DNA of 63,511 nucleotides, filler included, from Platydemus manokwari (GCA_037951405.1; 5 parts of 5 records of this genome joined end to end with filler, not necessarily neighbours in it); one strand, 5' to 3'; counted from the whole stretch's first letter, positions 50,152 through 63,511 are shown. Notes: generated from the letters alone by a model not told the origin. Made by a program: numbers and translations.

Positions 50152-50988
50152 ATGGATTGTAACGAGAATGATTTAGAAATATCGTGTTCTAAATGCTTCA
50201 AAATGACCAATGAGTTGTACTTTAAAAGTGCAAATTGTCAGCATCAATTTTGTAGTAATTGCTTCCAAAACAATTTATTATTCAACAATCAATGCCCACT
50301 GGATGATACGACACTCAAAGATATTCATGTAATGGAAGGTGCAGTAGTTAAAGAAATCGCATCTATTACAAAATTAGAAAATGATTTCGTCAATGATCAA
50401 TTGGAGAAACTGGAATGGGAGGCAGAATCATTTAGTCAAGATATCACTGAAGCTTTAAGTGAAATAGAAACAATGGAATCTGCAGCTAATGATTTTGAGA
50501 ATTTAACATTATCAATTCTTAATAATCTGATATCGTATGTGGATAACCCTGTTGATGATAAGCTTGAAGAAGAAAAACAAAACGTAGAATCGTTATTGGA
50601 AAATATTTTAGGTATTAAGGAATATAAGGAAGAAGCTGAGAAAATTCATGAAGAAATAAATGATTTTGTCTATCAGTTGTCAAGTTTTGTTCCACAAGAA
50701 ATGAGAGGTTATTTAGTTAATCTTTATCGATTGAGTGTTTGGAAACGAGAAGTTTCTGGATCCTTTTTTTCTCTATGGAACTTGATCTATGAACAATGGA
50801 AGATAATGTATAGAAAAATCAATGAATGTCTTAACAGTTTGGACAAAAATTTAATAAAATTGACAAAGAATAAAATAGTAAAGAGTAGTATGATAATGTT
50901 GAGAAGAATTCACAAGCTTAATATTAATTTGGAGGTATACGAAAATATCAATAATCAGAGTTGTGAATGTGAAATGAATGAGGAATGA
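50152..50988 (+). CDS. intronless RING-HC (C3HC3D) finger protein with acidic coiled-coil region, 278 aa; putative E3 ubiquitin ligase
   Basis: Clean ATG-to-stop ORF with CSKC-x13-C-Q-H-QF-CSNC-x10-CPLD, followed by E/L/N-rich heptad-like helices. TATAAAA at 50090-50096 and AATAAA at 51075-51080. Confidence 0.8.
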   Translation: MDCNENDLEISCSKCFKMTNELYFKSANCQHQFCSNCFQNNLLFNNQCPLDDTTLKDIHVMEGAVVKEIASITKLENDFVNDQLEKLEWEAESFSQDITEALSEIETMESAANDFENLTLSILNNLISYVDNPVDDKLEEEKQNVESLLENILGIKEYKEEAEKIHEEINDFVYQLSSFVPQEMRGYLVNLYRLSVWKREVSGSFFSLWNLIYEQWKIMYRKINECLNSLDKNLIKLTKNKIVKSSMIMLRRIHKLNINLEVYENINNQSCECEMNEE

Positions 50989-55199: not shown

Positions 55200-58100
55200 T
55201 CTCGGTAAATTTACCTTTATTTCTAACATATCTGAGGTGTTCTTAATAACATCCTTCTATGTGCACACGTTTATAACTACAGTGTGAATGCTATCAATTA
55301 TATAGATATTGAGAGATTTAGTGCTATCATTCAGCGATTTGAAGTAAATGGCATAGTCATTATTACTGAATCTGAATCCATTCGAATAGCTGCAACTGTA
55401 AGCGAAAATTCTGAGAGGAATGTTCAAAATCTAGTCCAAGGTTTTTACAAGGACCAACAGTAATAAAAATACATTTACACTGATTTCGTCCGGTATCTTG
55501 ACTTTATACAAACTGTGTGAACAAACTTTCGATATAGAGCCAATTGCAGTTAATCAAATTATAAAAAAGCTCAAATCCCAAAACTTTGAACCTCAGAAGC
55601 AAATCTTTAATAGAGTTTTTGGAAAATCATTTTTATATCAAGAAATTATGATTCGGAAATCAGTAAAACTGATTATAAAACAATTTCAAATTGGATGCCG
55701 ATGTCATTCTTAAATTAAATATGTAGAATTTTCGCGAAAATTTAGCTGGTTGCAATTGCGTAGCCATCAGCAAAAGATTGAGTCCTGGTAAAAGAGGAAG
55801 GGGAGTTTTTGAATGTTTCACTAATTACAATTGTTAGGTTTCTATGGTTCGAGACTATTACACGCTGTCGGTAATCAATCCAGCATGTGAGTTCGATCTA
55901 TTTACCTAAAATCAATGTTTGATCTGGTGGAAGAAATGAATACATTTATTTATACGCTACAATGCACAAATTGATTTAATTCGATAGTGTAATTACTTTA
56001 GATAAAGGAATTAAGACCAATTAGAGAGCAATTTAATATAGATTTTAAGAGCTGTGTACAAATATAAATAGGAATAGTTTTTCGTAGGCGATGTGTAAGA
56101 CAGATCAAAACTTGGGATGAGAGTAACTTGAGCAAGTTGAAATCAATCTTGATATATTTATTGTGCAGTTGCAGGGATTGCTGCAAGTCCGGTTTGGAGA
56201 TGTAGACATCATATAATTCCAAGGATGATTATTCGATAGATAAGGTTATAGGTGAGGTAGTTGATATTTTGTTTGACACAATGATTGGTTGAATTTTTTC
56301 TCACAAATGATAATAATTGTTCTGCTATTGTACCTTATATTGGTAATAAAGAGATGATACCAAATTCAACCAATCAATTTGGTGATAGGCTCCTTGATTA
56401 CTTACTCGATAGTATGGTTGATGAGTGCATAACACACCATTGGAAAAGTCACATTCCGTTCTCGGACTTGGATGATATTGATTACACTTATTTCTCCAGC
56501 AGTTCTGATTTTGACTCTATGATCATGAACATTTCTGTAGGTGTACAAATTGTTTTGGAAAGTGATAATGACTCTTTCATCTTACCACCGTCAATTGTTG
56601 ATTCCAAAGACCTAAAATTAGATATGAGTGTTTTTAAACCTTTTGGTAGAATTAATAACTATTCCTATTTCTGATATAGAAATAACAGATCTCTCTATTA
56701 TTTCTGAGACGCCAGTAATGAAAATCTTTACAGTTTGCTCTAACTCAAAGGTTTGGTGTTGTTTGTGTCAAAACAGAAAGAAATTTTTTGTCATACACTG
56801 TAGTGCCAATATTACAGTGGAACGAAAACACTTTGCTACAATTCATAATCTGACAGATATTAATGATCTTGGAATAACTTACCATAGTGGTTTTGTTGTA
56901 AATATTGTTAATTTCAAGCTACTACTCAAGTAGAATCTTGTAAATCTTTGACTTTAAATGACGAAATATTGATGTTATTACAGTTAAGGGAAGACGATCT
57001 TACTTCATGATGACTAAGCGGGCCAGAGATTGAAGGTTATATCCGTCTTCTATTGTCTGATAGGAAAGGTATAATTTCCATTCCGCCTCTTCCTACTATA
57101 GCTATTGCCAGTTGTAAGTCGAATTTATTATATGATTCTTTCCATTTCGTAATATTGGAATAACGATTATTACCTTGCCTTCATTGCCAATGCTGGTAAA
57201 CAAAAATCTTTCCTAACAGATCCCGCAAGGAGTGAGTTATCAGAAGAATAAATATTTTTATGGGACAAACTTAATTGGATCTTGGAGCACTTCTTTCTAA
57301 TTTAAATATCGACGTTCCTTTTTCCGAAGATCTTTTCACAAATGAGCCAATTTCTGTTGAAGAAATTGCTTCTGCTTTCAAAACCTCGAAAAATTCTACT
57401 ACTGGTAATGATAGCTTGTTGTCCAAGGATTGATGTGAGATTGATCCGAAATTTGTGTTTTTGCATAAGTTCTTTAATTTAATGTTAAGTTCAAATCGTG
57501 TTCCGGATCAGGGGAAACAATTTAAGACTTTTCTCATATTGAAACCACTGAAGGATGTGCAAGCACACTTAGTATCATCTTGGCGACCAATAACGCTAAT
57601 GAACAAGTCCAATAGATTGTTTTGTAACATTATTAACATTCGTATGCTTCGTTGGATTACCAGTAAAGATTTAATCTCTGGGAATCAAAAAGCACTTTTA
57701 TCTGAGGATGAATGTGCTAAGCACAATGCATGCCTTTAATCCATTTACAAATCTTGTAAAATCTCAAAGGGAAATTGCCATTTCGTTTGGTTAGATCTTA
57801 AGGAATAATTTCCTAGCTTCCCTCATGAGTTAACTTGGTTGACTCTGGAAAAGATGGGTTGTGCATCCAGCACAATCAATCTTCTGAAGAATTTGTTTAG
57901 TGGCGTGAGTACTGCATATCACTGTGAGAATATAATCATTCCTTCTATTGATTTGGTTAAAGGTGTCAAACGAGATTGCCCCTTGTCAAAGTCATTGTTC
58001 TGTTTATCGATAGATTTCCTTGTTAAGTCCTGTAATAATTTGAAGAGACTTCTCACATTATCTAATATGAAAATTTCCATATTGGCTTATGCTAAAGACT

Positions 58101-59783
58101 TGGTAGTTGTTTCTAGTGATGCAGCAGGGATTAGGTGGAATAGGTTAGGTGGAATTGTGAATCTGGCTAGTAAGGTTAATCTTACTTTTAATTCAAGTTA
58201 ATGTGTATATTTCTGTAGTGATCCGGTGAAAAGAACGGTTCTCAGAATATACGATAGTGATATTCCAGTAGTGGATGAAAAGAACCTATATAAGTATCTT
58301 GAAGTTCCGTTTGGATTCCCAAAGAGGAAAGATATTGGTGACATTTTAAATAATGTCATCTCCAACTTCGAGGTGATTTGCACCAAGGACTTACATCCGA
58401 GCCAAAAGCTAAATGCTTTAGAGTGTTTCTACACTCTAGACTGCTTTTTTTTTATCTTCAAAACAGAGAGGTCAGCATTTTATCTCTTTCCTCTCTACAC
58501 AAGAGGAAAATAGGTGGTAAGCCCAGGGAACTCGGGTTCGATGAAAAGATTAGACCGTTGGTTAAGAAAGTGATAGAAGTTAGCTTTTTTCCTGCAGCCA
58601 ATAATGATTTTTGTATACCAGAAAGATGGGTGGTCTTGGCCATATTATATTAAGAGTATAGTAGGAGGTTTTCGGTTGTTGAACAGTTTTGACTCTGTCT
58701 TTGATTGATCGCACTAGTGAATAAGCGTTTCAATCTTTCTGAAGTTGACGAATTCCATAGGGCTTGTGACTGGCTAAATAACACAATTGATGATGATCAT
58801 GCTGGACCAGGCTCTTGGTGGTCGAAGGTTTGGTTGAGGGTCCGAGCTCTGTGGAAGAGAGAAAAAGGTTTTAATTTCGTCTTGCTTGAAGGACATATAT
58901 TTGTTATAGTTATCTGCAGGGATTCACAGTATATGATAGACAACAAAGAGAAGAATAAATTGTGTTTTATTCTTCCTGATGGGTTTGGTTTCTTGAGTTT
59001 TATCTCTTGAACTGAGAAAAATTTCCAGGGTATGTTAGTTAAGACTGTTGCGCTATCTAAGATTTCAATGGGAGTCTTGAACTCAATTGTGTTGTCCCAC
59101 AGGTTTGGTCTTTTTTACAGCTGAATTTCATTCCTTTCTGTGTAATGCAGGGTAAATATTTAAATTACAGTCGGTGCGAGACTGCAGCGGAATAGATAGC
59201 TCACGTACTCAACTATTGCATTGGTAACCGTTATGGGGTGACCTTTAAGCAGTGCTTGAAATTTTGGCTCAAAGGCTTATTGCTTTAGGATATAATGTAG
59301 ACATCGACCGCTCATCAAATGAGGTGAAGACTTCCTTACGTCCTGACTTAATAATCCAAACTCCGGGTAGTAGAAACATGAAAAAACATTCCTTTCTCCT
59401 AGATCTTAAGGTCCCACTTGATAAGGAAGAAAACTTTAGGAATAACGTGATGAGAAACGACCGAAAGTATGAAGACCTAGCAGTTCAAATAGCTAAGCAA
59501 TTCAGAACTTTAGTGAGTGTGCATGTGTTAAAGGTAGTTGTTTAGGAACATGGGATCCACAAAATAATGGAGTTTTGAATAAAATAGGGTTAGATAATAA
59601 GAGTTCAAATGACTTGGCTTCACTTCTTGTTTCTACTTCTATTATAGAATGATATATAGGTTTTATAGATCTCAAATAGAGAAGGAGGCTAGGCCTCCTA
59701 TAAACAACCCCGCCAATATGTCTAACACACAATAACGGAAAAAATGAGGGCTTGTACACACGTAAAAGGGATACCAGTATAGG
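55200..59783 (+). mobile_element. pseudogenised non-LTR retrotransposon with RT and restriction-like endonuclease (R2 group; NeSL/Utopia-like)
   Basis: Ordered RT motifs: WRPITLMN..RLF, NQKALLSEDECAKH, WLDLK..FPSFPHE, GVKRDCPLSKSLF, LAYAKDL (YADD), YKYLEVPF, LHPSQKL. Then a CCHC ghost YSRC....E*IAHVLNYC (~59166-59219) and RLE motifs LRPDLII, LLDLKVP, KYEDLA, LGTWDPQN. Multiple stops and frameshifts; ends at a (TAT)n tract ~59784-59806. 5' boundary approximate. Confidence 0.9.
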
Positions 59784-60714: not shown

Positions 60715-61552
60715 AAGATGTCTTTTGCTTTAAATATAAAAAATAAAGAAGTTTTAGCAACTAACACAGCCCAAAATCAATCGATATATAATAAGCCAAA
60801 AGATCGTAATGAAATTAATTCAATAAATGTATTACCAGACTCGGTTAAAGTGATTTCAATCGTTCTGGAAAAAGTGTTTCGATCCGAGTTTATCAAAAAT
60901 TGTTGATAATTAATTAATTTTGAGTAATGGTGTATCCAAGATCCTTCAATATCTACAGATTAATTTAGTTATCTGTCATAATCATTCGAATCTATTCTTA
61001 TTGGTTTTATATAAATCTTAGTTACTTTATTTTTAAACGATATATTGTAAGTTTATTTATCAAACCAGTTATTTTTGTAAGTTATATCAAATGAGTATGG
61101 ATATTAGCAAGTTGTGGCGAACGACAACAAATTACTGGATATCTAAAATGAATGGTTTTTTAATTAAAATGATGATCAAAAATGTACTTGTATAAAGTAA
61201 TTCCGTGTATAAAGTAAGAAGCATTTAGGATAACGAATATTTTTAAATCTAAAATATTCTTAGAATTTGAGTTTAATTTTCTTGTCTGTATAGATCTATG
61301 CGATATTTTAGAAAATTCGTTTCGATCGTTTGAATAACAGTGAAAGAATTTATGGTCAACTTGATGGCTAACCACTAAGTTTTTTAAATACTGAATTTCA
61401 TTATAAATTAAGTATTGAGGGAAAATAAAAAATTAAATAAGTTATATAATTCCATCATTTCATTTGTACACACTATTAATACTTTAAAATAAAAAAGTTA
61501 GAAATGAATATTAATAAATAACGATCGATAATTTTAAAGGTTTATAATATAA

Positions 61553-63213
61553 ATGGTATGAATATGGAATAATAAATTAAACATCATACTTTGATGAAAC
61601 GATTTGATTTTTAGAAGGAAATCATCTCGATAAATATCGGTCAATCTGGAGTACAGTTAGCCAATGCTGCATGGGAATTGTTTTGTATCGAACATGGTAT
61701 CAGAGCAGATGGCACAATGCACAGTGCTATAGAAAACGATGAAACCGGTTATGAAACCTTCTTCAGATCTACAGAATGCAACTATATTCCACGAGCAATT
61801 TCAGTTGATTTCGAACCAACAGTTATAGGTTTGACATTATCTTGCATTAAGTTGTAATAGATTTCATTATTAATATTAGATGAAGTTCGCGTTGGTGCTT
61901 ACAGGAAATTATTCAATCCCGATCAACTGATCTCAGGCTTTGAAGACTGTGCCAACAACTTTGCACGAGGAAATTTTACTGTTGGTAAATCGTTCTTGAA
62001 GCCTGTTATGAAACAAATCAGAAAACAAATAGAAAGTTGTGATAGTATGCAAGGATTTTGTTTTTTAAATAGTTTTGATGGCGGTACTGGTTCTGGATTT
62101 ACATCTGCTGTTCAAGAAGAATTGTCTATGATTTTTGGCAAACGTCCCAAGTTTCAAATTGGAATTTACCCATCTCGTCGAATGGCTACTAGTACTGTTT
62201 ATCCATACAATGCTATATTTCATACTCATTCGACAATGACCCACACTAATTTGAATGCTTTAATGGATAATGAAGCTATTTATGATATTTGTACAAAGAA
62301 ACTTGATATAGAAAGACCCACATATAGCAATATAAACCGGATTATTGTACAATTATTTAGTAGTATAACCATTTCCGCTCGATCAAGAAATCTTATAAAT
62401 AGCGATTTGGATCAGTTATGTACAAATTTAGTTCCTTACCCACGAATCCATTTCCCTCTTTCACATCTTTCGCCTCTATTAAGTGTAAATAAAGCGGATA
62501 AAGAATCGTCAAATATTACTGACATGACACGAGATATATTCGATGCAGAAAATCAATTAGTTCAATGCAACTCTGCAAATGGGAGATACATAGCTTGCGT
62601 ACTTCAATTTCGAGGTCCGATACCACCAGCTCTTGTTAATAAAACCATCATTGAAATTAAAAACCGAAGTGATGTTAATTTTGTAGAATGGTGTCCAACA
62701 GGATTTAAAATTGGAATCAGCAGTATGCCTTCAGCAAGTCCACCGGGTAGTGCATTAGCTCATATGAAGAAAACTTTGGCAATGTTATCAAATTCCACTG
62801 CTGTAGTGGAAACGTGGATTGATTTGTTAAAGAAATTCGATTTGCTCTTTGCCAGGCGATCCTTTATTCACTGGTTTGTCGGTGAGGGATTGGAGGAAGG
62901 AGAATTTCTTGAAGCTTATCAAAACATAAAATCATTAGAGAATGATTATTTGGAAATATCTTTGTCGGAAAACGAAATGTCTAAAGGTGGTAAAATTCCA
63001 ACATCAAGAAGCTTTGAAATTACTGAATCTAGAAGTGCATCAAGAGGAATGAGCAAAAGCAAGTCAAAAAGTAAAGAGTCCAATTTATCGCAATCAAGTC
63101 TAAACAAATCATCGAAATCACCAAAAACAACAGCAAAAACTCAATCGAAATCACCAAATAAATCATCGAAATCTCCAAAGAAACCTCAATTATTTCCACC
63201 TCCTAGCAAGTAA
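61553..63213 (+). CDS. TUBA: highly divergent alpha-tubulin with basic C-terminal extension, 516 aa
   Basis: Exons 61553-61555 (ATG only), 61615-61828 and 61880-63213 (1551 nt). Introns fall after codon 1 and within the D76-equivalent codon, both positions known from animal alpha-tubulin genes. Alpha-type motifs: WELFCIEHGI, FEPTVIDEVR, GGTGSGFTS, DNEAIYDIC..LDIERPTY, TNLVPYPRIHFPL, FVEWCPTGFKIGI, FIHWFVGEGLEEGEF. Confidence 0.93.
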
Positions 63214-63511
63214 ACGTCTCCCATTGATTGTATTGAATATCTAAAATCATGATATCTTAAATCTATTATACTTATCAGAATATTTAAATGAATTTATTAA
63301 CTGACTATCTTTGCAGGTTTTAAACCTTGTCTAAAATTAATTTCAATCAATTTAGTGATTGAATAAATAACTGAAATATCTCATACACAAGGAGATAATT
63401 TTCCATAATTGTTATTTTTTGATGAATGTCCAAAATAAATAAAGTTTTCGACTTTAGATTTAGTATTTTTGTGTGGCAAAGTTAATTGTGAAGTATAAAT
63501 TTGAGAATTCA

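Follow-up and report, generated by a model that had tools for sequence, protein, structure and literature searches.

A conserved, divergent alpha-tubulin of a triclad flatworm with glutamine at catalytic position 254: a candidate gene-encoded lattice stabiliser

The dynamic instability of microtubules depends on Glu254 of alpha-tubulin, an otherwise almost invariant residue that triggers the hydrolysis of guanosine triphosphate (GTP). What, then, becomes of an alpha-tubulin that has naturally lost this residue? The question is raised by a gene of the triclad flatworm Platydemus manokwari (GCA_037951405.1), found in a stretch of 63,511 nucleotides, hereafter the window, in which five parts of five records of this genome are joined end to end with filler. 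At the right-hand end of the window, a three-exon gene on the plus strand (61553-63213; features in Table 1) encodes a divergent alpha-tubulin with glutamine at position 254. We describe its conservation, the purifying selection that acts on it and the family to which it belongs. We also propose, with what we judge to be an even chance of being right, that it is a functional, selectively maintained isotype that co-assembles as a dose-dependent, gene-encoded stabiliser of the microtubule lattice.

Domain and database searches were carried out with exon 2 and exon 3 separately, or with natural orthologue sequences. Exon 3 matches PF00091 (Tubulin, E 5e-30) and PF03953 (Tubulin_C, E 5e-33) and exon 2 matches PF00091 (E 3.5e-12), all above gathering scores. 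The translation of 61882-63210 aligns over its residues 1-365 with residues 77-441 of solved alpha-tubulins without a gap (E about 1e-127), residue n of this query being canonical residue n+76. Among the 60 best Protein Data Bank (PDB) matches listed, all are alpha chains (E 1e-121 to 1e-128). Furthermore, phylogenetic trees place the window gene within alpha, with the beta clusters, which have Lys at 254, forming the outgroup.

The same gap-free alignment confirms the central claim of a first-pass annotation of this sequence, namely that Gln (CAG) occupies position 254 and Asn position 246 while N249 and D251 are kept. The codon had been located exactly, whereas the peptide quoted with it begins at 62362 and not at 62365, an offset of one codon. 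Alpha-tubulins are expected to carry a GxxNxD motif together with the catalytic Glu254; the window protein has N-x-x-N-x-D with Gln254. Within the T7 loop and helix H8, the GTPase-activating element, the changes are F244S, G246N, V250S, T253D, E254Q, F255L and Q256C, and the local motif reads R-S-R-N-L-I-N-S-D-L-D-Q-L-C-T-N-L. The combination G-N-D-E at 246/249/251/254 is present in 107 of the 120 best database relatives. Residue 253 is Asp where the aligned canonical alpha-tubulins have Thr, and is possibly a shifted carboxylate.

The annotation had also suggested that the codon be checked in reads. Only one public sequencing run, X1, contains this DNA, and its Logan contig (mean word depth 13.6) shows zero differences over 61400-63300, CAG included. 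Because this run is probably the source sample, the contig rules out a single-read slip and is not an independent confirmation.

The claim that the open reading frame (ORF) and splice sites are intact also holds. The frame is open from 61861, and 443 codons run in frame from 61882 to the TAA stop; both introns are of the GT..AG type, and an orthologous genomic contig, L001, shares this exon structure. The start codon deserves comment. An in-frame TAG (61612-61614) precedes exon 2 and there is no ATG before canonical residue 36, so the ATG of the start must be spliced in. It is most simply read as the last three bases of exon 1, an arrangement (ATG/GTATG...TAG/AAG) common to the window and L001, where the ATG lies at 107-109. 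The junction of intron 2 is spliced out in a transcript of Schmidtea mediterranea, SMEST013371001.1, which reads ...P-T-V-I-D-E-V-R...

Two orthologues of the window protein were recovered. The first, P0001, is 84% identical and is encoded on L001, with introns as in the window. The second, P0003, is 83% identical overall and is an earlier model of S. mediterranea SMEST013371001.1 / dd_Smed_v6_24053_0_1, listed as 'alpha.56' in Table S1 of a published planarian survey (PMC12579930). There it is labelled 'tubulin alpha-1D chain-like', without comment on residue 254. The de novo transcriptome sequence dd_Smed_v6_24053_0_1 runs across the junction of exons 2 and 3, which indicates that the S. mediterranea orthologue is transcribed and spliced. 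Like the window protein, alpha.56 has the motifs D-G-G-T-G, T-V-Y-P-Y-N and D-L-D-Q-L-C-T-N-L and a Lys/Ser-rich tail. It differs in coming from another species and in that its published protein model starts at an internal Met, since the transcript model begins inside intron 1; its annotated N-terminus is therefore probably truncated. Gln254, within D-x-D-Q-L-C-T-N-L, is found in all three proteins. A literature search on tissue of expression gave no match for dd_Smed_v6_24053 or SMEST013371001, and two planarian reproduction papers mention only antibody staining.

To describe selection we give the proportions of nonsynonymous (pN) and synonymous (pS) sites that differ, in place of dN/dS, as dS is undefined where pS exceeds 0.75. 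Between the window and L001, pS is 0.76 in exon 2 and 0.86 in the core of exon 3, which is saturated, while pN is 0.069 and 0.055, respectively (core pN/pS about 0.06). Saturated synonymous change beside so little nonsynonymous change shows that purifying selection on the tubulin body is strong. Constraint on the tail is far looser, with a pN of 0.45. Since one base change would suffice to make Glu out of Gln, its retention over this distance is itself the work of selection. The first-pass annotation had asked whether orthologues in other flatworms keep Gln254 under constraint; they do, and the host is indeed a flatworm. What would mark a natural isotype deficient in GTPase-activating protein (GAP) function, an alpha paralogue with Glu254 replaced and the replacement conserved across species, is thus found in these three orthologues.

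The window gene is not alone; it belongs to a flatworm radiation of alpha-tubulin paralogues, most of which have lost Glu254. In a profile-free scan of 1.8 billion cluster representatives we took the best 150 matches and scored the 148 new ones at position 254. Glu was found in 99, Asp in 15, Gln in 10 and Val, Ser, Ala, His, Thr, Gly, Leu or a gap in 13; the rest were eight beta-tubulins with Lys and three sequences without position 254. All source-named divergent clusters among the matches listed are from flatworms (Fasciolopsis buski, Sparganum proliferum and Paragonimus westermani), and so parasitic flatworms also have alpha-tubulins without Glu254. A Steinernema protein (P0087), considered as a nematode example with Gln254, was rejected: the alignment reflects a gene model with a duplicated segment, and Glu is in place.

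The radiation is most apparent in S. mediterranea, for which 62 alpha- and 8 beta-tubulin genes have been reported (PMC12579930). We tallied residue 254 by eye from the partial sequences of Table S1 of that study, as the residue three places before T-N-L of H8. The units of this tally are gene models, and isoforms or duplicates occur among them (e.g. alpha.31/57 and alpha.52/58). Glu is present in 19 models, Gln in 14, Val in 9, Asp in 8 and another residue in 6, and the region is missing from a further 6. By our own count from this table, 37 of the 56 assessable alpha models therefore have no Glu254.

The window protein and its two orthologues form a fully supported trio in both FastTree and a quick IQ-TREE analysis. 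This trio is nested in a clade of 14 to 15 representatives, all of which have Gln254 except one with His (support 92 in FastTree, 93 by the IQ-TREE SH-aLRT, a Shimodaira-Hasegawa-like approximate likelihood ratio test); in the IQ-TREE analysis the clade has 15 rows, 14 with Gln and 1 with His. When the T7/H8 columns are removed, a core of ten Gln sequences and one His sequence still groups, with weak support (41), and the wider set becomes mixed with Glu and Asp lineages. On these trees, one origin of Gln254 in this clade is plausible, not established. Other Gln254 lineages, such as that of the Sparganum protein, are clearly separate.

Several relatives are worth recording in their own right. 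S. mediterranea alpha.15 has the Y/F-D-G-G-T-G and S-T-V-Y-P-Y-N motifs of the window lineage and is probably its closest paralogue. Three other flatworm alpha-tubulins with Gln254 (P0150, P0151 and P0143) have C-terminal extensions of 100 to 250 residues that are partly Lys/Ser-rich, and two of them have G-G-G-C-G-S-G instead of G-G-G-T-G-S-G. Both GAP residues are lost (D251N and E254Q; motif N-L-S/N-Q-I-V) in P0095 and in S. mediterranea alpha.31/alpha.57.

Position 254 is not the only site at which the lineage departs from ordinary alpha-tubulin. Thirty-one positions that are invariant in ten canonical alpha-tubulins are fixed to other residues in all three orthologues. They include P175R, S178A and E183Y in the T5/ribose region, F244S, G246N, V250S, E254Q, F255L and Q256C in T7/H8, and R422Y, E423Q, D424N and A426K in helix H12, besides Asp at Gly142 and Lys at the M-loop His283. 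The tubulin signature, PROSITE pattern [SAG]-G-G-T-G-[SA]-G, fails in the window protein at its first position only, where Asp stands; the other six positions fit, and the orthologues are alike in this. The N-terminus is M-K-E-I compared with the canonical M-R-E-C (R2K). The H1-S2 loop is three residues shorter, and position 40 is Ile, leaving no Lys40. Residues of the nucleotide site within alpha-tubulin itself (the N-site) are kept, namely G-Q-x-G, D69/E71, N101, N206, Y224 and N228.

The C-terminus is equally unusual. The acidic tail ending in Tyr or Phe, which like Lys40 is a usual feature of alpha-tubulins, is absent, and the tail found in its place contains 16 Lys, 3 Arg, 24 Ser, 5 Glu and no Asp, giving a net charge of +14 and an isoelectric point of 10.6; it ends ...P-P-P-S-K. 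The orthologue tails differ in sequence and are also Lys/Ser-rich and basic, with net charges of +9 and +4. Canonical tails, by comparison, carry -7 and -11, and those of sister Gln254 paralogues -13 and -31. The window tail holds three S-P-x-K motifs (K-S-P-K-T, K-S-P-N-K and K-S-P-K-K), none of which occurs in the two orthologue tails; proline-directed kinase sites and SPKK-type DNA-binding motifs follow this S-P-x-K pattern.

How might such a protein work? Hybrid quantum-mechanical and molecular-mechanical (QM/MM) calculations indicate that the exchangeable nucleotide site (E-site) of the beta-subunit below is completed by alpha-E254, which deprotonates the lytic water (PMC10319017). As the first-pass annotation had stated, engineering this residue yields a stable GTP lattice: human alpha-E254Q polymerises, retains GTP throughout the lattice, undergoes no catastrophes and binds EB3 along its whole length, and compaction is still blocked when it makes up about 20% of a mixed lattice (PMC11893814). 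Pure human alpha-E254Q microtubules grow curved and discontinuous (PMC11893814). Other reports describe human E254A, E254N and E254D mutants as well (PMC7018511, PMC8764682), E254D being described as a mutant in which hydrolysis is slowed, not dead (PMC7018511, PMC10319017).

We infer from human E254Q that the flatworm protein would have lost polymerisation-coupled GTP hydrolysis. In the mechanism we propose, it would bind GTP at its own N-site, pair with beta-tubulin and co-assemble into microtubules. Its minus-end face, formed by T7/H8 with Gln254 and Asn246, would be unable to take the proton from the lytic water at the GTP held in the E-site of the beta-subunit below. Each built-in copy would then lock one inter-dimer contact in a GTP-bound, expanded and stable state, and the overall effect would be that of a genetically encoded stabiliser whose action depends on dose. 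The salt bridge that joins alpha-R2 to beta-E69 has been tied to lattice compaction and hydrolysis by QM/MM (PMC10319017), and R2K may therefore push in the same direction as E254Q. The basic Lys/Ser tail, standing in place of an acidic one, would remove the usual substrate for tyrosination and glutamylation. Together with the changes in H12, it should alter the binding of motors and microtubule-associated proteins (MAPs) or bridge to neighbouring acidic tails. Because the N-site residues are kept and the body is tightly constrained, we consider co-assembly with ordinary tubulin the most likely fate of the protein.

Several observations weigh against this proposal. The core is only 50% identical to canonical alpha-tubulin, and with 31 lineage-specific changes, including G142D, E183Y, H283K and those of H12, the sequence gives no assurance of normal folding, dimerisation or lattice geometry. 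Asp253 could partly stand in for the lost carboxylate. As for expression, the search for runs of the source organism returned one public run and none on record as RNA, and the high transcript numbers of alpha.56 and of most divergent paralogues, as read from their identifiers, hint at low or very restricted expression.

One alternative is that the protein forms dimers that contribute nothing to a normal 13-protofilament wall. Its task might then be to cap microtubule ends, to sequester beta-tubulin, to seed or template particular arrays, or to make up a different polymer. We regard such a non-lattice or end-specific role as unlikely, though it deserves serious consideration. The changes are concentrated in three places: the lateral contacts (H283K and the short H1-S2 loop), the longitudinal face (T7/H8) and the outer surface (H12 and the basic tail). 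Pure human alpha-E254Q microtubules already show curved, discontinuous growth (PMC11893814). In addition, the reported ratio of 62 alpha to 8 beta genes (PMC12579930) suggests that many alpha paralogues compete for few partners. However, the strong constraint on the whole core (pN 0.055) is what one would expect of a protein with many conserved contacts still in use, residues of the alpha-beta intradimer face and of the N-site are mostly kept, and the literature searched offers no precedent among alpha-tubulins.

A second possibility concerns the chemistry. Asp253, with the kept Asp251, might still activate GTP hydrolysis, perhaps more slowly, and the isotype would then tune the rate of hydrolysis and the size of the GTP cap. 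Asp253 is fixed in the three orthologues and common in sister Gln254 paralogues, and Toxoplasma alpha3-tubulin shows a parallel shift of Glu to 253 (PMC10056924). Moreover, eight S. mediterranea paralogues have Asp at 254, the substitution that slows the human enzyme in the reports cited above. Nevertheless, helix geometry would place the side chain of residue 253 some 100 degrees from that of 254 on H8, in several Gln254 paralogues residue 253 is Ser, Asn or Val, and human E254Q, with D251 intact, is fully hydrolysis-deficient (PMC11893814). We therefore consider compensated catalysis improbable.

That the gene is a decaying or neutrally drifting duplicate, or that its codon is a sequence or assembly error, is very improbable and already contradicted: the family is very large and fast-evolving, S. 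mediterranea alpha.37, 47, 51, 55, 61 and 62 are truncated or without the T7/H8 region and the tail evolves fast (pN 0.45), but the ORF and its GT..AG introns show no damage and recur in a second species, core pN/pS is about 0.06 with synonymous sites saturated, Gln254 is identical in three species with its codon unchanged in the depth-13.6 contig, and the orthologue alpha.56 is transcribed and spliced.

A broader idea, which we advance tentatively and with more doubt than belief, concerns the family as a whole. Flatworms may have evolved a large, selected repertoire of alpha isotypes without the catalytic Glu, and their cells may set the stability and state of the lattice by mixing hydrolysis-competent with hydrolysis-dead alpha-tubulin. 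The polybasic tail could then serve as a MAP-like cross-linker or as a charge neutraliser for very stable arrays. Such mixing, if true, would be the natural counterpart of the engineered 'mosaic GTP microtubules'.

Table 1. Features of the divergent alpha-tubulin gene, in coordinates of the window.
Feature	Position	Strand	Basis
Exon 1, putative coding part: ATG alone, donor GTATGA directly after	61553..61555	+	predicted from the sequence and L001
Intron 1, 59 nucleotides, GT..AG, ends TTTTTAG	61556..61614	+	sequence; position kept in L001 (93 nucleotides there)
Exon 2, residues 2-72, K-E-I-I-S-I-N-I-G-Q-S-G... to ...E-P-T-V-I, ends in phase 1	61615..61828	+	translation; Pfam
Intron 2, 51 nucleotides, GT..AG	61829..61879	+	sequence; identical junction in L001
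Exon 3, rest of tubulin body, tail and TAA stop (63211-63213)	61880..63213	+	translation; Pfam; PDB alignment
GAT, Asp at canonical G142 (D-G-G-T-G-S-G instead of G-G-G-T-G-S-G)	62077..62079	+	fixed in both orthologues; Gly invariant in 10 canonical sequences
TAT, Tyr at canonical E183 (T5/ribose region of N-site)	62200..62202	+	fixed in three orthologues
T7 loop and helix H8 (canonical 243-259), GTPase-activating element	62380..62430	+	alignment to solved alpha-tubulins
AAT, Asn at canonical G246 of GxxNxD	62389..62391	+	PDB alignment
CAG, Gln at canonical catalytic Glu254	62413..62415	+	PDB alignment; unchanged in run X1 contig; CAG also in L001
AAA, Lys at canonical M-loop His283	62500..62502	+	fixed in three orthologues; His in 7 of 7 sister Gln254 paralogues examined
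C-terminal tail, 83 residues, Lys/Ser-rich, basic	62962..63210	+	composition

Elsewhere in the window, positions 50152-50988 (+) hold an ORF of 278 codons with an N-terminal Cys pattern resembling a RING finger; its matches to several RING families of Pfam (E 2e-5 to 5e-4) all lie just below gathering scores. Short ORFs on the same strand occupy 56285-59545 (+), where the G+C fraction is 0.33-0.37 compared with about 0.25 nearby. This region was considered as a decayed mobile element (retroelement), an interpretation we rejected, as six of its ORFs were tested and none had a Pfam match that was credible.

Work on hydrolysis-dead alpha-tubulins has until now relied on engineered human and yeast mutants, and in nature they have been noted for one apicomplexan isotype only. 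Dozens of these genes maintained by selection in an animal lineage, if this is what the flatworm family represents, would provide a natural system for studying how GTP-state lattices are used in vivo. They would also open further questions, such as how EB proteins, motors and severing enzymes behave on GTP lattices and how dimers are sorted among the products of 62 alpha and 8 beta genes. There are practical consequences as well. In parasitic flatworms, where related genes occur, tubulin serves as a drug target, and planarian work routinely treats 'alpha-tubulin' as a single entity. In our literature search, which paired E254/Glu254 with flatworm, planarian, isotype or evolution terms, we found no report of this substitution in flatworms.

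Among the closest known systems is the engineered human TUBA1B alpha-E254Q (PDB 9f3b/9f3r). The change and its position are the same, and the 9f3b chain is the second-best PDB match of the window protein, with Q aligned on Q. The human protein, however, is engineered and one residue from wild type, whereas the flatworm protein is natural, under selection and 50% identical to canonical alpha-tubulin, with G246N, T253D, G142D, E183Y, H283K, R2K, no K40 and a basic tail.

Within planarians, the Schmidtea polychroa protein Q7Z1L8 (P0095), described as a divergent planarian alpha-tubulin, belongs to the same Gln254 group and likewise has a long, non-canonical tail. Unlike the window protein, it combines D251N and an acidic tail (net -13) with E254Q, and has kept G-G-G-T-G-S-G, E183 and H283.

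The natural precedent is the alpha3-tubulin of Toxoplasma gondii and its coccidian homologues, in which residue 251 is Thr and residue 254 is Gln or His, the tail is long and the N-terminal M-R-E-x motif is altered, and for which reduced GAP activity and polymer stabilisation were proposed (PMC10056924). The window protein resembles them as a natural isotype without E254; in both, position 253 carries a carboxylate, the M-R-E-x motif is changed and the C-terminal tail is unusually long. The differences are that the apicomplexan proteins have lost D251, which the window protein keeps, that they are encoded by one gene per genome, and that tail length alone is reported for them, with no basic Lys/Ser composition. 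Compared by published description, and with the named nearest relatives of the window protein all from flatworms, the evidence points to an origin of the flatworm Gln254 genes that is independent of apicomplexan alpha3. Relative to the natural GAP-deficient alpha-tubulins known before, what is new here is the occurrence in an animal, a radiation of dozens of genes, the retention of D251 and, in this lineage, a polybasic tail.

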